Assembly: GCA_964199315.1 (NCBI GenBank)
Contig: OZ116703.1
Coordinates: 17,174,001 to 17,238,000, forward strand
Direction: 5' to 3'
Origin: Orbicella franksi
Lineage: Eukaryota
DNA: 64,000 nt
The notes below the pieces were generated by a model, which was given only the letters and a program-made list of their open reading frames with translations, was not told the origin of the DNA and did not search any database. Position numbers and translations under genes: made by a program. Shown here one piece after another: positions 17,258 through 45,873 of this stretch. Numbering within the stretch: the first letter of the stretch is position 1; the number at the start of each line of letters is the position of its first letter.

Positions 17258-17705
17258 CTTGCAGTTATCATTTGGGGATATTTACGTCGTGGAGTAAAAT
17301 TCTCAGAACTGGCTTTATTTGTGACCCTTCGCTCGTCTTTTCTTCTACTTCAGTTCATACTACATGAAGGAACTATTTGTTTTCAACTAAACCGCTGTCC
17401 TTTTACTGCGCTACTTGTTAAAATATTTTCTCAAGGGTAGGGAAGGTAACAGTAACTAAAATCACAAATCAGCATTGCGAAAATGTTCAACTTTACTGGC
17501 TAATCTTGAAGACAGGTAGTTCTTTCTTTCTTCTTTCAAGCTATAAAATTCAACATGAATCTTCCGCTTCGGTGAGTATATAAAACATGCCCAAGAAAAT
17601 TAAATGCAACATCTTACCCTCCCCTCCTTAATATTTCTCATTGATGTGACGCCTGGCACATTTTTGTTATGAGGGAGATGCTGGCGCCATTGATGTCCAA
17701 GCTTG
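17258..17705. promoter_or_regulatory. Shared head-to-head promoter/5'UTR region of MLST8 and ASTE1 copy 1
   Basis: Divergent ATGs only 448 nt apart. ETS-like CTTCCG at about 17561 and YY1-like CAATGGCG on the minus strand at about 17685-17692. Confidence 0.6.
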
Positions 17706-20700: not shown

Positions 20701-21023
20701 AGTTTTTATTATTTTTCTTTTCAATGCAAGAGTAAATTTAAGTACCAGTCTTTCTTTCTTTCGTCCCTTGTTTTTCTTCAGGTCGTACACCAGAGCAGCT
20801 GATTCCTTCTTTCGGACTGTTTCGCTTGTTCCACAGACTTAAAATCGCGGTAACCAGCGACCTGTTAGAAAAGATGGCGACGAACGAGAGACACGATGGC
20901 AAAAAGATTATTAAGGAGAAATCCCGGTCAACAGTCGGGACATCAAATGCGGCATTATCCTCGGACGAAACCTTGGAAAATCGTTTTTCACTTTTGTGTG
21001 ACATTGGAGAACAACAAAGCTAA
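17706..21023 (+). CDS. ASTE1: Protein asteroid homolog 1-like PIN nuclease, copy 1 (canonical C-terminus), 637 aa
   Basis: Exons 17706-18124, 18949-20201, 20782-21023 total 1914 nt in frame. Motifs MGIPGL, LVIDG, GGQYDEF, IFDGA, SEAD, NCPVLSSDSDF, AGND, FAQWQCVL; ends ENRFSLLCDIGEQQS. Confidence 0.93.
20353..20650. mobile_element. MITE-like repeat with internal ggcgggatgcgggat motifs
   Basis: Inverted ends aagagggcccaacttagg / cctatggtggcccctcat; repeated gggatgcggga motifs. Lies in intron 2 of ASTE1 copy 1. Confidence 0.5.
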
Positions 21024-22256
21024 GCCAATGAAACGTAACTTACCGGAGATCTAACCCGAGATCAAGTTAATAATACCAGTTATCGCCCAACATAGTTATC
21101 ACTATGGACTTGTCGCCAAATAAAAGGACGAATTCTACTGGCGATGTGCGGATCATGTGACGTACTTCCAAAGACTCGAGGTATTTGTTTCTTTTGGACT
21201 GATTGGCGATCGAAAACTGTTCGAAACTTCTACGAGAATTTAACAGCATGTAGAATTGTACCTGTTTTCCTGTCTGAAATTGCCAAACGACGAAAGTCTT
21301 CTTTTTTTCTTTTTTATAGACAAAGTTTAGTTTTTTTAGTTTTAGTCACACAACATAAAGTTTTAACAAACCTACTTTTTGAGCCTCCATTGAAAGGTGA
21401 CGTAATAGCGTTCGCAATGTACAAGGAGGTTGGTCCAAAGGATTGTGGTTAAATTTTTCACTTTGTGTTTCTTTTACATATACAATTCTTATCCGATGAA
21501 AAAGTAAAAGATACTATAATGATCTTAGCAATAAACACCTTTGTTTACAAAACCTTGTCTTCTTTTTGTTTTAAGGGCTCGTTAAAATTGAGCGTCCTTC
21601 TTCGAATTCTTCGAGCGATTTTTGCTTGAATTTTAAGATTTAATCCCAAAACCAGTCAAGCTTTCCTCGTAAGGTAACATTTCAGAGACGGCAAGGTTAA
21701 AAAAATGACAATACAGACCACTGTACTTCAGTGTAAGTTGTCGTCAAATGAAAACAAAAAACAAACGAACAGAGAAACAAACCAAATTTTTACATTTATT
21801 TCAAGGCTAATACGACTGGACCATCACTCGACAAATTTTGAAAAAGTCTAAGATTAACAACAAAATTAACGTGGCTGAGAACTATAAATCGAACCTCTTC
21901 TAATAGCCACCTCTCAACAGCGACCACATATTTTCATCCCAAATATTTTCATCCCAGTTGAGAGATTCAGTTTGCCGCTTCTTCCGGACGAACCGCCACT
22001 TGGGGCAGGGAGCGAAGAAGGACGGCTGTTTTCGCAGGCCATGTTTTAATTTCCCAACAATGGCCACCTCCCCACAATTGCCAGAGAAGTTAGACTGCAA
22101 ATTTAAGACTGTGACCTCCACTGGAAACACAAAAAAGCTTAAAATATCGCGTGCTTAACACGCCTGACTAACTTCATATTATAATTTAATTGTAGGCATA
22201 AAGTTGCTTGCGTAGGCGATTTTGTCTCGGTTTCGTGCAACTGAGTCATTTGAGAG

Positions 22257-25200
22257 ATGGGCGTTCGAGGACTTACCAGTTACATTAACTCAATCGGGAG
22301 TCTTTGGACACAAACTGAGCTTCGAAATACAAAGCTTGTCATTGATGGACCTGGCGTATGTAACTGCCTTTACGTGGACAGTGGCTTCGACCGTCAATTT
22401 GGAGGCCAATACGAGGAGTTTTACAAAGTCGTTCTGTCGTTTTTCGACGCTCTGGATTCTCGGGGTGTAGATTCCTTTGTAGTGCTCGATGGCGCTCATG
22501 ATCGAAGCGATAAAAAGTTAGACACTTTCAAGAAAAGATCAGTGTAGAGGATCCAAGCTGGTGACGCGCTGTGCAACGGTAGATCAACTGATGGTGATGT
22601 CTTCGTTCTGCCGCTTTTGTCAAATCTTGTCTTTGTGCAAGCGCTCAGGGATCGCGGTGTAAAATTTGCTGTTCCTGACTGGTAAGTTTTAACGCAATGT
22701 AAAATAAAGTAGATTTTACAGATAATGATAACGTAGGAACAACAAAATAGCGAGCGTCTTTTCTGCGAAGTCATTATCCTCTCTGCGAAGCTTGCGTCCT
22801 GTCTGGTCTTTCTGCGAAGCAAGGCGTCTTTTCTGTGAAGTGTGTGTCCTTTCTGCGAAGTGCTCTTCCTTCCTGCGTCTAATACAGGAAGGATGTTCAA
22901 ATGTGGGCTATAAAATGCTGAGCTTTGCAGTGTAAATGAATGAATGGTAATTAATTTTGTAATTCAGTTTGTTATCGTAAGCGGTTTCCTGTTTCAGTTT
23001 CGCTTTTGCACGCAGTCCCTATCACGCAACAAGGAAATGCTGCGCAACGAACCCAAACAATAGTGTGAAAAGATTGTGTAAATGAGGTTGATGAAAGTAA
23101 ACAGGAGTATTTTGTGTACGATCTTATACCTATTTCTACAGGAACGATCGCTGACTTGAAAAGAGTGAAACTGGCTTACTTCAATTTCCGCTTCTACTTG
23201 AGCTTGTTTATGTCAATGAGTAGTAAGTGAATCGGGACTGCAAGAGAGCCTTTCCCTGTTTCAGTAAGGAGAGCTGCACTTGTAATATTCCCGGCTTAAA
23301 CCGGTCACATTGGGCCAGGGATTATACAAAACATCAGTTACTAGTAAGTTAACATACAGTTAGTGCTAACTGCACTCCCAACACTGCAACCCGGAAATCA
23401 AACTGATGTATAACGCCAGAAGTCTAAAAAGTTTCAAATTTGTCATTTCGTACATATGCGCACGCAATGTAAGGCATACTTTTTGTTACTTCATACTCCT
23501 TCCAGATTACGAAGGACGAATTAACTAGCTGTAATTTTCATGTTTCTTTTCAGTGAAGCGGATTCTGAAGTCGCCTCCTTGGCCAACGCTTATAACTGCC
23601 CTGTATTAAGCAATGACAGCGATTTCTTTATCTTTGATATCGAAGCAGGCTACATCCCACTTTCCTCTTTCGACTGGAAGTCTAGTCGCCTAACAGCCAA
23701 AATTTTCCATCGGAGAAAATTGGCGTCACACTTAAGAATTCACGCAGAATTGCTGCCTATGTTCGCTTCTTTAGTGGGCAATGATTACGTCAGCATTGAT
23801 GCATTGGAACCGTTCATCCATGCCCTTAGTCGCAGTCAGTATTCCATGGATCATTCTAGCAAGAAAGAAGCCAGATTTGCTGGGATCGCAAATATGCTTT
23901 CCACCGTACCTGACAAATTTGTTCTCCAAATGGTGTCGTCTTATGGCGGGATTCAACTAAGGCAAGCTGTTGAGCATTCTCTACAAGAGTACTCGATCAC
24001 AGACTCGAATTTGTTGCGCTATTTCCAAAAACGCGTGATCAGTAGTTCTCTCAGAACCCAAAACGGCCGAGAAATCGACGAGTGGCTTTTGCGCAAGTTC
24101 CGAGAAGGACAGTTTTCTACTAATTGTATGAGCGGCTTAACATCGGGAAAGGTCTTGCTCAGATTCCAGGTTGAAAACTGTCGGGAAAAGTCGGCGAATT
24201 ACTGCTCCCAGAAGCTGAGGCGGTTTGTTTATGGGATTTTAAACGATGATGAAGTTTACAACCGGAGAGGAAATGTAGCGATGGTTGAAGAATGGGACAG
24301 AGAGGGTTTGACGGTGAAGCCGTCAAATGTTACTCCCTACCAAGAGGGTGTGGTCCGAGTGAGTCTTATCCCATGCCTTGATGCTGAAAACAGACTAACG
24401 GTTTTGCTAAATGCGCTTAATTCAAATACACCTTCCATAAGATTGTTGCCGGAGAAGTTTAAATTAATTGCAGCGTCACTTCGTTTTCTCAAGAGCAACG
24501 CACAGCCACCTTTGAAGACGAATCACCTTACCGCCATACTCTGCAGTTGTATTAAACTACAGGACGGCTCGTGGAAACAATACATCTCCCTATCTCAGTC
24601 GTTTGATCGGCAAGCGGCACAAAGTTTTGCTCAGTGGCAGTGTGTTTTGAGAGATGCTGTTCATCTGAACTTTGTTTTGATTGAGCCTGTTGAAACACCA
24701 TGTATTCACAAAACGTTTAATGGACGACTGGCGCACTGTCTGCTGAGCGAACTTGATCGAGGTCAGTCTCCTTCCTGATAAATGCTTGCTTGTTTCTTTT
24801 TATTTCAAGGGGGAGGGAGGAGGGGAGGGGGATCGCGTAGAGTTTATGCCAATGTTTGTTTCGTTCCGATATTTTTTGTTGGTATAGTGAGAGAGTCCAT
24901 GCACTGTTAACGCTGCACTTTGCCACAATGTTTCCAGGAACTTGTTCTGTTTTCTTTTGTTCTCTAAATGTCAAGAATTTATCTCCTTAGCCATTGCCGT
25001 ACCTAGAACATTTGAAAGGAGCAATGTCAACTAGTAGTTTTGTCAACCTCGTGCCCAGGGAGCTTTGAAGGGATAAGCCTTGGTCACGAGTTGGCTTCAA
25101 ATCGAGGGCGACCATAAACTAAGAGACTAACACATAGGTGAAAGAACCTTAGGTAATGATAAACTGAAACAAGATCTAGGTTTGTTGTGATTGATCGATT

Positions 25201-26486
25201 TCAAATTTAAAATTGAAACAATAAGACAAAATTTTTTGATATGTGCTATCCATTGTTGTTAGGTCCCGCGAGGTTTTTCAAATTAACATAAATATTTCCT
25301 CTCTCATTCAGGTCGCATGCCAGAAGAGTTGCTTCCGTCTTACAACAATCGCTTTCTTTACAACGAAATTTGCAATGCGTTGGAGATAGAAGGTAGAATA
25401 AGAACGTTCTCAATTACAATTTACTTTTCGTTTTATAACTACTCTCATTGTTAATTTAACGTTGTTTAAAAAAATCGTTTTGAAGCGTTAACGATGTACA
25501 AACGTAACTTCATTATCATGTATTTTACAATTATCTAAAGAATACCTGCTTGAAAAGGAGACTGAAAAGCAATCAGTGTTTTAGCATGAGTTCACTGTCC
25601 GTGAAGAATGTCGGACGAGTGAAAACAATATGAATGGGATTGGGGCGAGAGGATGAACGGTGAACCCGAAGAGAACTCAATCTACTTAAAAAACTGATTA
25701 ACATTAATCGAAAACATGAGACAACACAGCGTAAGAAATTAGTTTAAAGTTGATAAGGTACAAAACTAAGCTATTGGATTGGCTTAATCTGACTTTGAGT
25801 AGCCACGAGTCCAAATTAGTAATCCATCTTTTGTTTTATTTTATCTTCCTTCCTGGTGATTATAGGCAAGATTAGCGTTGGCCTGAACACAAAATATCCT
25901 GGTGTCACACATCCAAAGTCGTACCAAACATGGGACAGTTGCCGTCCCCCGGCCCAATCTTACGCTCCCCTGGACATCAGGAGTGCTGTTTACAGGTACA
26001 AATATGTTCTTTTTATCTACCCCTTTCCCATCCCATTCCCCCCGTTTTCTTTTCTTTCTTTTTTTTTTCGTCCCCTTGACGATTATAAAGAATATTGAAT
26101 GCCTGTAAACAGACTATTTTTCCACAGACTACACGGGAAAAACTTTTATGATTTTATTAAATCTGATTACTTTATTAACAAGTTCCTAAGACAAGTTCCC
26201 CTCTTCAGTACATACAAAACGAGACGAACGAAGTAGAACACACCAAGTGGACAAAGTCTTGATGTACTGCCAAATTCTCAGAACTTCCTGTAAAGGAATT
26301 GCGTCGCAAACAGTTTAGAGAATTAATGTTGTAATAGCTCTTGCATGGCTGGTAAAAGACGCTAAATAGTGTCGAGTTCAAGTTGTAACTTCATTTAGGT
26401 GACAGCTCCATTTAATTTATTTTCAGTCCAGCAAAACGATGGGAAGCACATGGTCATACACGACAGACAAACCAGGTGTCTACGAG

Positions 26487-26519
<33 letters not shown>

Positions 26520-27564
26520 GCAGCAGCAGCAGTGGCTGTCTTCATCACAATATGTATGTAGTCAAATATCTTTGCAGGGTCAATCAATCAAGTCTATTAA
26601 TTTTATGCATCGCTGTTATGATGTAAGGAAACTGGTGTCTTTGACTTCGTAGAAAAAAAAAAACGATTTTTGAAAGCTCCCGCAGCTTCTCGACTAACCT
26701 CCGTGCCTCCAATAGTCGCTCTCCCTAAGCTTCCGGAATAAATTTGACTCAAGGCGCCATATCGAAACATCACGGTAAGACGTTTGCGACGTCGCCATTT
26801 CAACCGCAACTTTTACGAGCTTTAATTATTTCTCTTTCTTCCAGAAACAGAATGCGTCCCATAAGCGACATGACCGACCTATGTATTACTCTCCAGTTCC
26901 TCAAGGTGGAGCAAGTTGGAGCTTGCCCTTGTCCTCTAGTAAAGGGTATTACCAGGAACAACAGTATGCCCAACCCAGCGTCTATTCAAGTGGTCATCAC
27001 GCTGGTAAACCTCATCCAGTGACACCTACATCCAGTAGAGTAGCACAGCGCGCTTACACACAACAAAAAAGAGAAGCAGAAATCTCTACCGGGATTCAAA
27101 ACTTAAATCTACGTGCAAACCCGAGCCACAGCAGCAAGAATTACGCAGCAGGTGAGAACAGGCACTCGCCATCTGCGCTACGACCGAGGGAGGTATCGCC
27201 ACCGGGATGGGTGTCGCCTGGCTCCAAAAGTACGTCGGCAGCTTCTTACAATCCAGTTGATTATAGGAATGAAGGCAAAACACCACCGAATGCCAGACCC
27301 CCTCGCGCCAAGTCTACAGCACCGTACCCATCAGCTACCCACTGTTCCCTCTCCTCCACTCGGCGGAGGGATGAGCCAGTATCTTTATCTCCATTACGCA
27401 GTGGTTATGGTCAGCGGTTTTTCTATGATTCGTCTTCACTGGACGATTTACCACTCCCTTCTGATGAAAGTTGGTCAGTGAGGGATTCATCAAGGTCTTC
27501 CGATGAAAGCTGGTTATCCGACTATTACAATGATGACGCGGAGCCCTATTTTGAAGATTTTTGA
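22257..27564 (+). pseudogene. ASTE1: ASTE1 copy 2 with long disordered tail; one in-frame TAG at codon 97 (recent pseudogene, null allele or base error)
   Basis: Exons 22257-22681, 23554-24761, 25312-25392, 25866-25995, 26427-26553, 26845-27564 total 2691 nt. The only interruption is TAG at 22545-22547, and the frame continues (RIQAGDAL...LPLLSNLVFVQALRDRGVKFAV). IDG, LDG, EAD, NDSDF and GND motifs are intact. Confidence 0.8.
26488..26532 (+). repeat. Coding (CAA/CAG)15 polyglutamine tract
   Basis: caa cag cag cag caa caa caa cag x8, in frame in exon 5 of copy 2. Confidence 0.8.
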
Positions 27565-29349
27565 TGATTTTTCCCTTGCAAGTCAATAGCGAAAACTGCC
27601 GAAGAGTTTGGATTAATAGGCAACAGTGACTATGTTCCGGCTGTCAGTATTATTTATATTAAGATAACTCAAAACAGTTTCCAGCATTTAGATTTTGATT
27701 TAGTCATGGTAGTTGATTTTGCAGTATTTCAGTTTGTAATTTATCCTCACTACATTTCTATTGTTGGGATCACGTTAGACTAAGTTATGGGAGGAATCCG
27801 AGACCGCCTAAGCAAAAGATATGCAGCAAGGCCAGGTGAGCGGTGGTCACTTCCACCAGGTCCACCAGGGGAGGATGGAGGGGCGCAAAGTGTCTTCCCA
27901 CGGCAATCTCGTCAAACTGCAAGATTTCGCACTGCCCAGCCAGATTTTATGTTCGAAAGGCCGCAAAGGATCATACTAGACGCCACTAACCTAGACCCTC
28001 GGGATTAGCGGAATGTAACCCGTTATCGCGAATCGGTCATTATATATGCAGTGAGAATAGTTGAAATAGTTTACGATTCTAAATTCATATTATCTCACCC
28101 TTTAAATTACTTTACACCTTTTTGTGGTGTTACTAGTTACGTCGAAGTAAAGCTTCTCAGAAAGTGTTAACTTCACTGTTTTCCTGCTGTTTTTAACGGG
28201 CCACAGTAAGAAATATTACTGAAATTTGTGAGTTTAAATAACCATTTACCTTAATTACCAGACGTTTGCCGGTGATCAACAAAAATTGAAAGCTGGGCTT
28301 CGCCTTCTTGGTGAGCCGTCAGTGCTATGAAAAGAATCTGGGAGATTTGCGTCCTCAGTTAAACGTCATCGCTTCTGCATGCATTGCGTGCCGTTTATTA
28401 AACGTTGCCAAAAGTTGCGTCTTATCCTGCTGATTGAAATTTGGTAATATAATAAAATTTCACCGTGCCGTTTTTGAATTATAAGCCCCTAAAGCTGTAA
28501 TTAAGGCTGCTTTTAGCAGGTCATACTGTTGCTATGGTAACCTATTGTATCACGAAAATAATAACAACGTGTTCACCAATGATTGGGCAGCTTTTTGATA
28601 TCATGATTGTAGCATCAAGTGATAAAGCGTGGTTATAACGACCCCTCAAAATCTAAGTGCTGGAAACTGTAACGGCAGGAATCGAAATGTAGTTTTATAT
28701 TACAGCCAAGAATGTGAGTACAATCTCCAAATCCAGATAGAAATATGAAAATTCATGGCAAATTCGGCCTCATGGTACATATTCTCCATAAACTGAAATC
28801 CAAAACTTGATCATTTTCTTTACTGGTAGAGGAGGGTAAATGAATATACAATACGTATAATGCAAGCCATTCTATGATTTTTTCTAGCTGTGTTGTCATT
28901 ACGGTGCCCAGAATATCGTTTTGTAAACAAGCCATCAAGATTAAAGAGGCTCAAGCAAAAAGGTTTAAATTTCAGTAATAATGGATTATGTAAAGCTTTG
29001 AAAAACACAAAATATTGATGTACAAATAGGGCAAAAATATTTCTGCGGTGAAGACGCCTCGCCGATCTAAATGGTGCACGCTTCGTGATGGTTACAAAAC
29101 AAGTTCTTTGAAGTTTAAGAGTATATGTCAATAAGGATCAAATAAATCGCGGACACAGCTCAAAATTCAATTCCGCCCATACTTTGTCCATTGGTAGTGA
29201 AAAAGACATTAAAAAGGAAAGTTAAAGAAAGAAAAAATTATAAAAATTAAAAGAGACCTAATATTTTAAATTACAGAAGATTAATCTGTATACATAGTCT
29301 TTCGTAATAAGTTGTAGCTTTTATATCGAATTGTTAATGCCTGATGTAT

Positions 29350-29569
29350 NNNNNNNNNNNNNNNNNNNNNNNNNNNNNNNNNNNNNNNNNNNNNNNNNNN
29401 NNNNNNNNNNNNNNNNNNNNNNNNNNNNNNNNNNNNNNNNNNNNNNNNNNNNNNNNNNNNNNNNNNNNNNNNNNNNNNNNNNNNNNNNNNNNNNNNNNNN
29501 NNNNNNNNNNNNNNNNNNNNNNNNNNNNNNNNNNNNNNNNNNNNNNNNNNNNNNNNNNNNNNNNNNNNN
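29350..29569. other. Assembly gap (220 N)
   Basis: Run of n characters. Confidence 1.
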
Positions 29570-32187: not shown

Positions 32188-35100
32188 ATGGGAGTTCGCG
32201 GACTTACCAGCTATGTCAACTCAATCGAAACTCTCTGGAAACGTCAGACCAAGCTCAAAAACACAAAACTTATCATAGACGGGTCCGGCTTATGTAACGA
32301 TCTTTACAGGAACGCCTTCGACTGTCGACATGGAGGCCAGTACGAAGAGTTCCACGACGCTGTACTTTCGTTTTTCAATGCGCTTGATTCTAACGGTGTA
32401 GAATCCTTTGTAGTCCTCGATGGTGCACAACATGTAAGCGACAAAAAGTTAGAGACACGCAAGAAAAGGGCAAATCAGAGGATCGAAACATCTTTTGCCT
32501 TAGCCGAGAATCGGGCACCAGAAAACAGCGAAGACTTTCTTCTTCCGCTTTTGTCGAAGTTTGTGTTTCTGCAGGCGCTGATGGATCTCACGAGGGATCA
32601 CGGTGTCAAATTCGCGGTCTGCGACAGGTAGGACGCATTATTACATTATTATAGTAGTAACAGTAGTAAATGTTTGCATGCATACAGTCGAATAGATAGG
32701 TGACTTGGAGACTGTTGCCAGTGACTGGACAGATATCTCCTTTGTGGTACGGCGAGATTAAAAATTTACCGAGCGAAGCAGCCATGCCTATGCAGATCAC
32801 TTAAGATGGTGACATCTTGGCGATGTCAGCTGTCAGAATGAACTAAATAATCTGCATTTTAGCTTATTTCACCAATTTTAGAATAACAGTACTTTTCATT
32901 TATTAGCCTGCGTAGCAAACGCTGGAGTAACGGCGAGAAGACGGTCGCGGGCGTAGACACGCAAGGAAAAGGAAATGCTTATTCCACTTGTCGACATTTT
33001 ACCGAACGCGCCCTAACATGCCGCTCTCCCTTGGGGCGCCAACTGTCCCATGAGAACCAATGATCATCAATGTCCGCCAAATCAAGCGCCCAGCTTGAGT
33101 CCGCTAACAGCAAATAGTAATGCGCGTTACATAATGACCGAGTGTTATTACGCGAAACGTGACTCTCGCCTTGCAGCATATGGAGATGTTGTGTTACAAA
33201 AGTTTGAATTTATAAAGGTTTGGATGAGGAAAATAATCGACATTATAGCTGAAATTTTGATATTTTTCAATAAGAATGACTTACCTCAATGCCTTGTTGT
33301 CTTTTCTAGTGTCTTCTCGCTTCTGAGCTCGATCCGAAGCCTTTTTACCGACTTATCGCTTTTTGATTTTCCTCTCCTTTCTTAGATTAAAATAATAATA
33401 ATAACTCCTCGCATCGTAAGCTTGGGCCGCCTGTGTTAAAATTTTCTCCTTCACTCCCACGAGTATTTGATAAATGGATTACAAGGACATCCTGTCCACA
33501 TATAGTACTAGACTCTAAGCATCGGTTTTAGATCGATGTGTTTGCCGTTTTGCGAAAGACCTCTCAACGTTTCCTGAACAGAAAATTCGGATTATACATG
33601 AATGTCAAATTTCTAATGTCACTTTTGACCAATCAAATTGCACTATTGCTTCCCGTTCGTGGGCGAACTAAACTGCGAGAAGGCTCCCTTGTTGTTTGGG
33701 TAGCGTATCGCGGGCAAGGGCGGCGGAGCCGCAACCGCGAGCCGGCGAAGCTGGCGAGAAGAATGGGGCGAGGAGAACTTTACCTCCCCCCATTCTTCTC
33801 GCCTGCTTCGCCGGCTTGCGGTTGCGGCTCCGCCGCCCTTGCCCGCGATACGCTACCCAAACAAGAAGTGAGCCTGCTTGCGGGCTAAACGGAGCTCGTT
33901 AAAATGGTTGGGATTGCAGGCGATTCCTTTTCTCCCCACCCCCTCCAATTCTCGCTCACCCCCTCCCCACCTCTCCCCAATTTTTTGCTCACTCCAGGCG
34001 CACTTCTTTGCTCGCCCGCTTCCTCGCTCGCTTGTTCGATCTCTTAGACTGGTGGCAGTCTGTTTTTCTCTCGAATTTCAGAAGGGGTTATGATGCGAGA
34101 CGTTTTGGCTAAAGGGGAATGGGACCAGACATGGGCGCGGCACGCACGAGAAGAAAAAATTTTCTCGTCTCGCCTTCTTCCCTACTCGGCCACCGCCATA
34201 CCGCCCTTTTGCGTTCGCGATGACTAAACACTCGTCGTAGTTCTAGCAGACCATCGATGTCTCCGCCTGGAAAAGGAAAGTAAACGGTTGCTACGCAGGT
34301 CATCACTCGAGCGTCTGCTATGCAGAGTATATTTTTATCCATACTACAGGCAAATGAATTGAGATTCTCGATCCTCGATCTTCCGACGAGGCACGACATT
34401 TAATTAAACAGAGAGTAATGGATTGAAGAAATGAATCAGTTTGGTGACGTTAGCGATATTGTTTCAGTTTCCAGGCCTTTTGATTCTTTTATACCTGAAA
34501 GATTTATTGCAAATAAACAACTAACGTAGCTACTTGGTATGAATGTAGATGCGGCGAGAATTGTTGAATCAGAATTTTTTTCTTGGAGTGTTTTTCATAA
34601 TAAACAGACACCGGAGACCAGAATCCTTGATTTGAGCGAGACGACGAGCATCCTCGACCTTTTCATATCAAAGTTCCTCCCCCCTTCACACCCCCCCCCC
34701 CCGCCCCGGGAACAAATGCAATGACAAAAGGATACAATTGCCTTGCCTAAGCACATCTTTATGTTTCTTTCAGCGAAGCAGACAATGAAATCGCCTCCTT
34801 AGCCAGCGCTTGGAACTGCCCTGTTTTAAGCAATGACAGCGACTTCTTTATCTTTGATATCAAAGGCGGCTACATCCCACTTTCTTCTTTCAATTGGAAA
34901 GCTGGTTTCTTAACTGCCGACATCTTCTATCGGGAAAAACTGGCATCACACTTTGGAATTAGCGAAGAATTTCTTCCTTTGTTCGCTTCTTTGGTGGGGA
35001 ATGATTACGTGAGTTCCGAGGCATTGGCAGAGTTTAGACCCACACTGAATTGCGGAAAAGCGTCAAGATTTGCAAGCATTGCTAACATTCTGTCTCACTC

Positions 35101-38100
35101 CAGGACAGAAGAAGAGGCGCTCGAGTCTGCTCTACTAATGGTAGAGTCAGTGGTAAGCAGAGATAAACTAAGACAAGCTGTCAAGCATTCTCTCCAGGAA
35201 TACAAGATCACAGAGTCACATTTGCTGCTCTATGTCGACAGTGGTGTGGTCGACAGCTCCTTGAAGACTCAAAATGGCCGTGAAATTGAAGGATGGATTT
35301 TGCCCAAGTTTCGCAAGGGACTGTTCTCCGCCAAATGTATGAACGCCTTGACAACGGGGAAACACTTTCTCAGAACTCAGGTTGAAAACTGTGAGGAAGT
35401 ATCGGCTAATCAGTGCTCTCAGCGCCTGAGGAAAGTCATGTATGGCATTTTAAACGATGCTGCAGCTCACGATGGGGAAGGAAATATAACGATGGTCCAA
35501 GAATGGGACAGAGAGGGCTTAGAGGTCAAGTCGTCAAATGTGCCACCCTACCAAGAGGGCGTAGTCCCTGGAGTGAGTCTCATTCCAAGCCTCAAGAAAG
35601 ATGAAAGATTAGAGGTTTTGTTAAATGCGCTTGATTCAAACACAGCTTCCATCAAGTCCTTGCCGGAGAAGTTTAAATTAATTGCAGCCTCACTTCGTTT
35701 TCTCGCAAGTAACGCACAGCCATCGTTGCAGGGGAATCACATCACCGCCATACTCTGCAGTTGTATTAAACTAGAAGACGGCTCGTGGAAACAATACATG
35801 AAAAGCACAATCAGTCAGTCGTTTGATCGGCAAGCAGCACAAAGCTTTGCTCAGTGGCAGTGTGTTTTGAGAGATGCTGTTCATCTGAACTTTGTTTTGC
35901 TTGAGCCTGTTGAAACACCGTGTATTCACAAAACGTTTAATGGACAACTGGCGCACTGTCTACAGAGCGGACTTGATCGAGGTGAGTCTTTTTCCGGATG
36001 AATGCTTGCTTGCTTCTTTTTCTCTATTTCGGAGGGGGGGGTGGGTTTCAGGGGGGGAGGGAGAAGGGGAGGGCTGAGTCACCTGGGGTTTATACCAACT
36101 ACGAACCCCATGCACCGTTGGCAATGCACTTTGTCACAATGTTTCCAGGAACTTGTTCTGTTTTTCTTTTGTTGTGTGAATGTCAAGAATTTATCTCTTC
36201 AGCCATTCCAGTGCCTAGAAACTTGAAACGAGCTATGTCAACAAGAAGCTATGTCAACCTCATGCCTAGGGCGATTTGCAGGGATAAACGTCCTGGAAAC
36301 GAGCTGGCTTCAAATCGGGGGCGACCATAAACTAAGAGGCTAACACTTAAGTGAAAGAAACTTAGATAACGATAAAACGAAAAAGGAACTAGGTTTATTG
36401 TGATTGATTGATTTTAAATTTAAAATTGAAACATTTAGACAAAATGTTTCGAAATGTGCCATCCACTGTTCTTAGGTCCCGCGAATTCTTCGAATTAACG
36501 TAATTATTGCCTATCTCTCTTTCAGGTCGCATGCCAGAAGTGTTGCTTCCCTCTTCCAACCTTCTTTACGGAGACATTTGCAATGCGTTAGAGAGAAAAG
36601 GTAGAATAAGATCGTTCTCAATTACATTTTACTTTTCGTTTTATGACTACTGTCATTGTTTCAACGTTGTTAAAAAATTCACTGTGAAGCGTTAATGAAG
36701 GAATTCCTGCTTTCTAGGGAAAAGTACGCTAAAAGGTAATCAATGTTTTAGCATGAGTTTGCTTTCCGTGAAGAATCTCGGATAAGTGAAAAAAATGTGA
36801 ATGGGATCGTGGCGAGAGGAGGAATGGAGAACGCGAACAGAACTCAATCTTCTTGAGAAACCGAATAACCTTAATCGAAAACATGAGAAAAAAAAGGCGA
36901 AAGAAATCATTTTAAAGTTGATAAGGTACTACTGGACTGGCTTAATCTTGCTTCAGTTAACCACGGACCGATCTACCTTTTGTTTTATTTTATCTTCCTT
37001 CCTGGTGATTATAGGCAAAATTAGTGTTGGCCTCAACACAAAATACCCTGGTGTCACACATCAGAAGTCGTACCAAACTAGGAATAGCTATCGCTCCTCG
37101 ACTCAGTCTTGCTCTTCCATGGACAGCAGGAGTGCGTTTTACAGGTAGAAATATTTTCTCTTTATCCACCCTGTTTCCCACATACCATCCCCGTTTTTTT
37201 GAATGTATTGAATGTCTGTCAACAGACTATTTTTTCGCAGACTACAAGGTCAAAAATTTATGATTCTATTAAATCTGAGTGCCTTATCAGTAACAAGTTG
37301 GCAAGAATGTCTTATTTCATTGTGTGTTCAACATTTAATTTCTCATAACCACTTCACTGCATACAAAACGATGCGGGAACGAAGTAGAACACGCCAAGTG
37401 GACCAAGTCTTGACATGGTACCAAAATCTCTGAACTTATTATAAAATAATTGTGTCGCCATCAGTGAAGAGAATTAATGCTTTACTAGCTCTGCCATGGC
37501 TGATAGACAAAGCCAAATGGTGTCGAGTTGTGACTTCAGGGTGAAGGTGACAGCTCTGGTTAATTTCATTTTAGTCCAACAAAACGAAGGGAAGAACATA
37601 GTCATACAAGACGGACAAAGCAGATGTCTACGAGGAAACAGCAGCAGCAGCAGCAGCGGCGGGTATCGTCATCACAATATGTACGTAGTCAAATATCTTC
37701 GCAGGGTCAATCAATCAATTCTATTAATTTTATGCATCGCTGTTATAATGTAACGAAAACCTGCCACTCAGCCGCTGGTGTCTTCGACCCCGTAGAAAAA
37801 ACATATTTTTGCAAACCCGCACAGCTTCTCGACTAACGTCCATGTCTCCAATAGTCTCTCTCTCTAATTTGACTCAATGCACCGTACCGAAACATCACGG
37901 TAAGACGTTTGCGACGTCGCCACTTCAACCGCAACTGTTACCAGCGTTAACAATTTCTCTTTCTTCCCGAAACAGAATGCGTCCCATAAACGACATGACC
38001 GACCTATGTATTACTCTCCACTTCCTCAAGGTGGAGCAAGTTGGAGCTTGCCCTTGTCCTCTAGTAAAGGGTATTACCAGGAACAACAGTATGCCCAACC

Positions 38101-38491
38101 CAGCGTCTATTCAAGTGGTCATCACGCTTGTAAACCTAAGCCAGTGACAACTAGATCCAGTAGGGTAGCACAGCGGGCTTACACACAACAAATAAGAGAA
38201 TATGAAATCTTTGCCGGGATTCAGAACTTAAATCTACGTGCAAACCCGAGCCACAGCAGCAAGAACTTCGCAGCAGGCGAGAACATGCTCTCGCGATCTT
38301 CGCTACGACCGAGGGAGGTATCGCCACCGGGATTGGTGTCGCCAGGCTCCAAAAGTGCATCAGCAGCTTCTTACAATCCAGTTGGCTATAAGAATGAAGG
38401 CAAAACACCACCGACTGCAAGACCTCGTCGGCCCAAGTCTAAAGCGTCTAAGCCATCAGCTAGCCACCATTCCCAGTCTTCCGCTCGGTGA
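32188..38491 (+). CDS. ASTE1: ASTE1 copy 3 (chimeric; disordered tail), 824 aa
   Basis: Exons 32188-32627, 34774-35981, 36526-36600, 37015-37144, 37575-37680, 37976-38491 total 2475 nt in frame. Catalytic motifs IDG, LDG, EAD, NDSDF and GND intact. Confidence 0.88.
32904..34325. mobile_element. TAGCCTGCGTAGCA-family MITE with nested insertions in intron 1 of copy 3
   Basis: Ends tagcctgcgtagcaaacgc / gcgtctgctatgcagag. A shorter version sits at the equivalent position in copy 4 intron 1 (about 42368-42560). Boundaries approximate. Confidence 0.55.
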
Positions 38492-44700: not shown

Positions 44701-45873
44701 TAAAGGTGAACCATCTCGTCTCTTTACTCTGCTGTTGTCTTATTTTGGAAGACGATTCCACTGAACATAAAGGAAACGCTGAGACCAGTACGTTTGATCT
44801 AGGAGCGGCACAAAGCTTTTCTCAGTGGCAGTGTGTTTTGAGGGACGCCATTGATCTTAACTTCATTTTGTGTGAGCCCTTAACTACACTGTGTGTTCAC
44901 AAGACGTTCAATGGAAAACTGGCTCATAGTCTGCAGGAAAAGTTAAATCAAGGTATATCTTTCCGGTACAAATGCGTACAGACAATTTGTTTTAAAATCT
45001 GACAAATATCGAGAGTGTCAAGGCTGTGTAGCTCTCTCTCCTAGTCATTTAATGCTAAAATCTTACTCCAGACCAAAAGGACTTGAAAGCCACATCCTTT
45101 GGCACCACGCACACCAATATAGCTTATATTAGGGCGTACCCTCTGGGGGTCCTAGAAATGGAACACACCAAGCTAACACAGTCGTGGGAAAAGGATTCCG
45201 GATATGGTTGGATTACCGTCTCCGAAAATTGACTCGGCTTGTAATTTTCGTCCAAGAAGCGTCAGCCAATTGGCCATTTCCGAGTTAGGTTGTGCCTCTG
45301 TTTCAAAATGAGTCCTCGTGCAAAGTCTTTCATATGAAGATGTATTTGATTTGCACGAAAGTGAACCTATAGCAGAATTGTTGTGCATCAAGTCTCATTT
45401 TGATATAGAGGCACAAGGGAACTCGGCAATGGCCTATTGCCATGTACTCGCTGACTGGTTGTTCTAGCATGAGGGAATTTTCACGGGGCGCAACTGTTTT
45501 CTACTTGCTGCTGTAATCGACTTTGCTTTAAGTAGGCTCTACTCTTTTCCTGGATGTTTCTTATCATCGGTTGTAGAGAATAAAACCTTCTCTTCTCTTC
45601 GCTTCTAGATTCAAATTATATAAACATCACTACATGCTATATTGAGAAACAGAATGAGAACTGTTTGCTTTACATCTTTCAGGTCGAACCCCAGAAGAGC
45701 TGCTTCCATCCTTTAGAAACCAGTTGTTTTACAAAGAACTTAACAACGCAGTAACTGATGGCTTACAGGCAAAGCTGATCAGTGATGAGGGGCAGAAAAG
45801 TTTCTGTATTTATTTTGTTGTCGTATTGCTAGTGGTATTTTGTTGCGTCGGATTCTCTCTTCTTCGAGTATGA
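41710..45873 (+). CDS. ASTE1: ASTE1 copy 4 with predicted C-terminal transmembrane anchor, 607 aa
   Basis: Exons 41710-42137, 43748-44952, 45683-45873 total 1824 nt in frame. Catalytic motifs intact. Last exon GRTPEELLPSFRNQLFYKELNNAVTDGLQAKLISDEGQKSFCIYFVVVLLVVFCCVGFSLLRV*. Confidence 0.88.
43138..43592. mobile_element. Harbinger-like MITE in intron 1 of copy 4
   Basis: TIR GGCTGGTTTTCACTAGCGACGGAGTCG / CGACTCCGTCGCTAGTAAAAACCAGCC; absent at the homologous position of copy 3 intron 1 (about 34630). Confidence 0.7.

Follow-up and report, generated by a model that had tools for sequence, protein, structure and literature searches.

A 64-kb stretch of Orbicella franksi DNA (contig OZ116703.1, positions 17,174,001 to 17,238,000; hereafter the window) carries four tandem ASTE1/Asteroid nuclease genes on the + strand, with copy 1 beginning at 17703, copy 2 at 22257, copy 3 at 32188 and copy 4 at approximately 41710; all window coordinates below refer to that strand. 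In copies 2 and 3 the nuclease is followed by four further exons, exons 3–6. We conclude that these are probably genuine 3' coding exons of an old lineage of ASTE1 paralogs, encoding a disordered regulatory or localisation tail of approximately 350 amino acids (aa). The spliced product of copy 2 is 896 aa long, and its last 352 aa, derived from exon 3 together with exons 4–6, constitute the tail. As judged from sequence, the tail consists of short conserved motifs set in a fast-evolving, S/P/T-rich and net-basic linker, with an acidic aromatic tip and no folded domain.

Splicing of the tail exons

Two sets of RNA contigs and two sets of raw reads, the latter thin (2 reads in run X22 and 47 in run X24), were placed on positions 22150-27900, which cover copy 2. 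After the reported cut offsets were applied, the contigs contained GT..AG joints at 22681>23554, 24761>25312 and 25392>25866, the last of these in two independent runs. The joint 25995>26427 was present in one RNA contig and in one raw read. The joint between exons 5 and 6 was seen as a loose end because the polyQ repeat had been skipped in read placement; a contig beginning at 26845 carries the last 30 nucleotides (nt) of exon 5 just before that position. The RNA contigs were at least 99% identical to copy 2, compared with only 80-90% identity for copy 3 in the same region, and therefore derive from copy 2.

Exon 3 (25312..25392, 27 aa) is bounded by two of these joints and is homologous to 45675-45749 and 20781-20852. 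Exon 4 (25866..25995, 43 aa) contains the islands KY..., YQTRD and AQSYAP, has tblastn matches in two related coral-like loci (L003 and L004, introduced below) and has a counterpart in the Oculina model P0045. Exon 5 (26427..26553, 42 aa) contains a run of 15 Q encoded by CAG/CAA at 26488-26532. Exon 6 (26845..27564, 239 aa plus the stop codon) encodes the disordered, S/P-rich and net-basic segment with its acidic-aromatic tip; it has 27 homologs and is covered by an RNA contig spanning 26845-27900 with 99.3% identity to copy 2. Exons 4–6 all have AG/GT borders and continue one frame from the phase-1 end of exon 3. The RNA joints fall at exactly the coordinates given in the original prediction, which had been made from the genomic letters, and confirm that exons 3-4-5-6 are spliced in phase. 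That exons 4–6 are coding and joined to the nuclease is borne out by the same joints, by the matching phases and by a fused gene model from Oculina patagonica (see below).

The counterparts predicted for copy 3 were also found, with the same splice sites and in phase, as read from the genome sequence. Exon 3 of copy 3 (36526..36600) was delimited by alignment to copy 2 and by its splice sites, while exon 4 (37015..37144), exon 5 (37575..37680, with 6 Q at 37639-37656) and exon 6 (37976..38491, ended by a TGA at 38489-38491) have AG/GT borders and are in phase. The RNA runs contained a fraction of 0.14-0.53 of the words of copy 3 exon 6. Exon 6 of copy 2 is preceded by tandem acceptors (cag|AAACAG|, 26842-26850), of which the RNA takes the first. 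In copy 3 (37967-37975) and in a close relative, L008, the AG of the first acceptor has been lost, and exon 6 therefore begins 6 nt later with the frame kept.

A separate downstream gene composed of exons 4–6, with the ASTE1 transcript ending after exon 3, would account for two observations. XP_078355579.1, a stand-alone 217-aa model from Oculina annotated as 'uncharacterized protein', begins at the conserved Met of exon 6, and unspliced contigs extend over every copy 2 intron, although at lower depth (18.2 for intron 3, compared with 46.2 for the corresponding joint). These unspliced contigs look like pre-mRNA or DNA background. Transcripts that end after exon 3, leaving exons 4–6 separate or untranscribed, are contradicted by the exon 3>4 joint, which two RNA runs show independently of each other; the joints 4>5 and 5>6 likewise tie the exons together. 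Coding conservation also reaches upstream of the exon 6 Met, the phases match across all exons, and the fused Oculina model was made independently. A separate gene is already largely refuted by these data, and we regard it as highly improbable.

In the 3' untranslated region of copy 2, a segment of 32 nt (27668-27699) was covered at approximately sixfold the surrounding RNA contig depth, and many of the reads there continue at either end into sequence unrelated to copy 2. The segment resembles the central part of a dispersed repeat common to many transcripts.

Age and origin of the tail

The tail had initially been described as newly recruited, either from another gene or de novo. A six-frame search of the whole assembly found the exon-6 peptide solely at copies 2 and 3, and the genome therefore holds no donor gene. 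An exhaustive phmmer search of 1.8 billion representatives returned five clusters of short proteins homologous to exon 6, and a profile search yielded 27 proteins. The only named homologs are two models from Oculina patagonica; the others are short open reading frames (ORFs) in coral-like data, and a Tara Pacific contig carries the exon-6 ORF by itself. One Oculina model is the stand-alone protein described above. The other, KAL9956444.1, is a 581-aa hypothetical protein in which the ASTE1 body, represented by its C-terminal half, leads into exons 3, 4, 5 and 6; it is an independent gene model with the same fusion of body and tail that had been proposed for O. franksi.

Relative loci from two coral-like holobiont assemblies (ERZ25067872 and ERZ26858540) and from a chromosome of Oculina patagonica (L009) were compared with the window. 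L003, L004, L008 and L009 each hold a tandem ASTE1 array in which an Asteroid_N/XPG_I_2 ORF is followed, after approximately 2 kb and in the same orientation, by a tail ORF. The exon 2 adjoining the tail in L003, L004 and L008 is closest to that of copy 2, with 73-87% identity, compared with 57-64% for the other paralogs. In L003 and L008, the acceptor and donor sites of exons 3–6 are kept, and body and tail are both intact. Because the tail and its splice sites follow a copy 2-like paralog in Oculina and in the two coral-like assemblies, the tail-bearing paralog is, on this comparison, an old stony-coral lineage and not an Orbicella novelty. The search for the origin of the tail thus ended not at a donor gene but at the same four-exon tail behind ASTE1 in other corals, contrary to recent recruitment. 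P0025 (348 aa, from a 253-kb contig) has a tail with an internal tandem duplication of approximately 95 aa, extending from the SKSASAASYNP motif to YxQRFF, and the motif block of the tail can therefore be repeated.

Within the window, tblastn and blastn searches with the tail confirmed the earlier statement that copies 1 and 4 have no counterpart of exons 4–6, and revealed no remnants of these exons behind either copy. The tail of copy 3 has a composite history. Sliding-window comparison showed that copy 3 is copy 4-like upstream of an approximate crossover at 35650..35700 (88-97% identity) and copy 2-like downstream of it (88-96%). The switch in identity lies inside exon 2, and the tail of copy 3 therefore arrived with a recombination event, in which a copy 4-like 5' part would have been joined to a copy 2-like 3' part. 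Synonymous divergence (dS) of copy 3 from copy 2 falls from 0.62 in exon 2 to 0.215 in the tail.

Composition, conserved motifs and constraint

Several measures indicated that the tail is disordered and of low complexity, as had been proposed. AlphaFold2 (AF2), run on exon 6 with a 24-sequence alignment, gave a mean predicted local distance difference test score (pLDDT) of 49, a predicted template modelling score (pTM) of 0.09 and no secondary structure. Mean hydropathy of the tail is 0.371, below the charge-hydropathy boundary of 0.42, compared with 0.476 for the nuclease body. No Pfam match was found for the tail ORFs and their homologs, and a feature search of the ESM Atlas with the tail gave no usable match. 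The tail contains 30% S/P/T, 13% Q/N, 11% R/K, 9% D/E and 10% aromatic residues; after its first 30 residues, 30-aa windows carry a net charge of +1 to +4, while the last ~50 residues are strongly acidic.

In the original prediction, this composition was read as prion-like, with a newly recruited FUS-like tail by which the nuclease would condense into granules (RNA or germ granules) or into foci of repair. The content of the tail was as described for copy 2, including the Y/Q/S/G-rich and S/P/R-rich segments and the repeated SDESW, but the polyQ tract of 15 Q in copy 2 is just 6 Q in copy 3. We took as prion-like a core of at least 60 aa that is rich in Q/N, poor in charge and kept in orthologs, as judged by composition counts. 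The best 60-aa window of copy 2 contains 22 Q/N, which together with its 15-Q run and the predicted disorder is compatible with condensation, and the ~10% aromatic and ~11% R+K residues could serve as stickers. The best windows of copy 3, L008 and Oculina, however, contain only 13-15 Q/N and those of the other lineages 8-9; charged residues number 7-17 in the best windows, that of copy 2 included. The Q run, 15 residues long in copy 2, is down to 6 in copy 3, to 4 in both L008 and Oculina and to at most 2 in other lineages, and the homologous exon 5 of L003 lacks a Q run. The 15-Q run is a CAG expansion specific to copy 2.

Further features of the tail depart from FUS-family low-complexity domains, which it resembles in disorder, in aromatic and Q residues and, for copy 2, in polyQ. 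Across seven tails there were no RGG motifs, and [GS]Y[GSQ] occurred 0-2 times per tail; the [G/S]Y[G/S]Q repeats of the FUS family are thus missing, as is conserved Q richness. The tail is rich in charge (~20% of residues) and in proline (S/P/T 30%), and the Y/Q/S/G segment is acidic in other corals (YREDHWEE...). Moreover, the tail is old, being found in other corals, and what is conserved in it is a set of discrete motifs and not its composition. Prion-like or FUS-like character does not therefore hold as a trait of the family, and a condensate-forming tail appears decidedly unlikely, although the CAG expansion may give copy 2 alone some Q-driven stickiness.

Conservation across lineages is concentrated in islands that are kept down to 37-50% identity. 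These include VPQ[GD]GAS.WS.P.SSS, PPR.VSPP..VS, SAASYN and YGQR[FY][FL]Y, an acidic run followed by I-x3-[IF]-x2-[LI]-x-L-R, and S[SD][DA]ESW followed by a terminal D[DF][FYW]. The second-last of these resembles a nuclear export signal. In copy 2, a pattern scan located the motif I-STG-I-QN-L-N-L at 27082..27111, behind an acidic flank, where it fits the class 1a export-signal pattern (hydrophobic-x3-hydrophobic-x2-hydrophobic-x-hydrophobic); its copy 3 counterpart lies at 38207-38236. Each of the seven tails scanned contained exactly one class 1a pattern, in the homologous place. The motif is kept in 23 of the 24 aligned sequences, with substitutions among hydrophobic residues, and the region is predicted to be disordered. 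The acidic-aromatic C-terminal tip of copy 2 (27460..27561) contains SDESW twice and ends in ...YFEDF, and its ESW and terminal D[DF][FYW] are conserved across lineages. Conserved features of the tail thus appear to point to short linear motifs, namely the export-signal-like pattern and the acidic-aromatic tip, rather than to composition.

Given these features, the tail would most likely be a regulatory or localisation module similar to the C-terminal tails of other XPG-family nucleases. The conserved hydrophobic pattern would constitute a putative CRM1-type nuclear export signal, conserved SP sites may be used for phospho-regulation, and the acidic ESW...DF[YW] tip may bind a partner or act in autoinhibition.

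Selection on the tail was estimated from the ratio of nonsynonymous to synonymous substitution rates (dN/dS). For the tails of copies 2 and 3, dN/dS was 0.61 (95% bootstrap interval, 0.42-0.90), and against the close relative L008 it was 0.66 (0.46-0.91), compared with 0.26 for the nuclease body, whose overall range was 0.26-0.33. All indels within exons, both between copies 2 and 3 and relative to L008, were multiples of three. These data show that the tail is under weak purifying selection.

A number of observations weigh against a functional tail. The upper bounds of its dN/dS are near 1. The exons had been described as conserved between copies 2 and 3, and they are indeed 80-90% identical, but the introns are equally so (79-89%), and this identity is consequently no sign of constraint; exon and intron identities are similar relative to L008 as well. 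The export-signal pattern is a degenerate one that occurs commonly, AF2 does not predict the motif to be helical, and the P0041 lineage lacks it. Scans of the tails for the PCNA-interacting protein (PIP) box (Qxx[LIVM]xx[FY][FY]), AlkB homologue 2 PCNA-interacting motif (APIM), monopartite nuclear localisation signal (NLS; K[KR]x[KR]), LC3-interacting region (LIR), W-acidic, RVxF and RGG motifs found none that is conserved. The tail-bearing copy of Oculina (L009:9480-10738) has a frameshift at the GNDY motif of exon 2, and GenBank therefore splits the gene into models of 270 aa and 581 aa. A second tail-bearing copy in ERZ25067872 (L004:6754-10402) has a tail ORF of only 133 aa, and the 6.7 kb upstream of the copy contain no match to exon 1; this copy has probably decayed after duplication.

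Both tail-bearing copies are also damaged in the reference. In exon 1 of copy 2, codon 97 (22545-22547) is an in-frame TAG, which lies upstream of the catalytic motifs EAD, SNDSDFF and GNDY of exon 2; RNA contigs of runs X1 and X2 have C at 22545 (CAG), and the TAG represents a null allele if it is not an error of the assembly. Exons 1-2 of copy 3 are open, and the TGA at 38489-38491 lies in its tail, where copy 2 has CGG. The copy 3 frame is open onward to 38728, and the TGA shortens the tail by ~79 aa. In P0028, which is 95% identical, this codon reads TGG (Trp) and the full ORF is 241 aa long. The final TGA of copy 2, similarly, stands in place of a conserved final W: P0023 (98% identical) has Trp and then a stop, ending in ...FEDFW.

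It could accordingly be argued that the tail is transcribed and in frame yet dispensable, with redundant paralogs drifting towards pseudogenes and the motifs reflecting slow ancestral decay. The dN/dS of 0.6-0.7, the similarity of exon and intron identities, the premature stops in the reference, the Oculina frameshift, the truncated copy at L004 and the loss of the motif in the P0041 lineage are all in keeping with such drift. Drift is more difficult to reconcile with the survival, in five or more lineages, of ORFs of 200-240 codons and of four splice-site pairs where protein identity has dropped to 37-50%, with exon indels that are all multiples of three, or with bootstrap upper bounds of dN/dS below 1. 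In addition, neither body nor tail is damaged in L003 or L008, and sense codons are found at the position of the copy 2 stop in two Orbicella RNA runs and at that of the copy 3 stop in P0028. We consider a dispensable tail unlikely.

Nuclease family and C-terminal modules

Copies 2 and 3 are assigned to the ASTE1/Asteroid family by an XPG_I_2 match above the cut-off, obtained with exon 2 of copy 2, and by the acidic motifs of a FEN-like PIN domain in both copies, and their catalytic activity is predicted. In copy 2, exon 1 (22257..22681), delimited by the contig joint 22681>23554, encodes the ASTE1 N-terminus, and exon 2 (23554..24761), supported by Pfam and by RNA joints, encodes the XPG_I_2 nuclease core and a helical body. 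Exon 2 matched Pfam XPG_I_2 (PF12813) with 45.2 bits (gathering cut-off 24.2; E=1.1e-11). The sequences of both copies 2 and 3 contain the acidic motifs IDG, LDGA, EAD, SNDSDFF and GNDY, the last three of which are intact in exon 2 of copy 2. The coral copies share with the family the N-terminal MG[VI]RGL start, the XPG_I_2 match and all of the acidic motifs, and differ from it in the ~350-aa disordered tail with its three added exons and in their arrangement as a four-member tandem array whose C-termini differ among members. They represent a form, specific to corals, of an already known nuclease family, and no novel type of system. A run of N lies within the window at 29350-29569.

All four copies share the start of exon 3, GR[MT]PE[EQV]L[LI]PS (20782-21020, 45683-45873 and 25312-25392), and are divergent beyond it. 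In copies 1 and 4 exon 3 is read straight through, whereas in copies 2 and 3 a donor site follows after 81 or 75 nt. After the shared start, copy 1 ends in a soluble segment of ~80 aa and copy 4 in a hydrophobic, anchor-like one. It is thus chiefly the C-terminal modules that distinguish the ASTE1 paralogs of the array, as compared here.

Nucleases of the XPG/FEN superfamily as a rule have disordered regulatory tails. Like those of FEN1, XPG, EXO1 and GEN1, the coral tail extends the core at its C-terminal end, is disordered and carries short linear motifs, although none of the coral tails has a PIP box, an APIM or a classical NLS. Human GEN1 offers the closest precedent for the putative export signal: an export signal in its disordered C-terminal tail holds the enzyme outside the nucleus up to mitosis (PMC4172962). 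GEN1 likewise belongs to the XPG superfamily, and its C-terminal extension, which is long and disordered, contains an L/I-rich pattern that fits the export consensus (PMC4172962). The two tails, however, are without sequence homology, GEN1 belongs to XPG_I and ASTE1 to XPG_I_2, and the coral motif is putative.

A literature search for an asteroid homolog in coral found nothing. To our knowledge, only one study, in human, has established ASTE1 as a DNA-end nuclease recruited by shieldin. In a later article, human ASTE1 is described as an XPG-related nuclease that is recruited by shieldin and trims 3' overhangs (PMC9879193, citing Zhao 2021). The Asteroid family has been placed among FEN-like PIN-domain nucleases, with its function listed as unknown (PMC5499597). 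Silkworm BmAst has the PIN+XPG architecture of Asteroid, and its knock-down raises proliferation of Bombyx mori nucleopolyhedrovirus (BmNPV), while REase of Ostrinia furnacalis, described as a PIN-domain nuclease, degrades double-stranded RNA (PMC10298989); enzymes of the Asteroid type can thus have roles other than DNA repair. BmAst shares the PIN+XPG architecture with the coral genes, and the relation of these insect enzymes to them is by family only; a tail comparable to that of copies 2 and 3 is not reported for the insect nucleases (PMC10298989).

One could tentatively suppose, although we rate it as unlikely, that the paralogs of the array split their work by cell location through interchangeable 3' ends that branch from exon 3. 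Copy 1 would be soluble, copy 4 would carry a membrane anchor, and copies 2 and 3 would have a long disordered end with a working export signal and an acidic tip that binds a partner or is autoinhibitory. In that case the paralog with the tail would be a cytoplasmic nuclease, acting for example on foreign or symbiont-derived cytosolic nucleic acids in the manner of insect Asteroid-family enzymes, and not in nuclear end-trimming repair.

The present analysis also bears on existing gene models, since part of the Oculina tail is annotated as a separate 'uncharacterized protein' and can now be corrected, and the two premature stops in the O. franksi reference may represent null or truncated alleles that segregate. 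The ASTE1 genes that corals keep in tandem differ widely only at their C-terminal ends, and the tail, with its four hydrophobic positions, its SP sites and its acidic tip, provides mutable handles on how an XPG-like nuclease is positioned and restrained.

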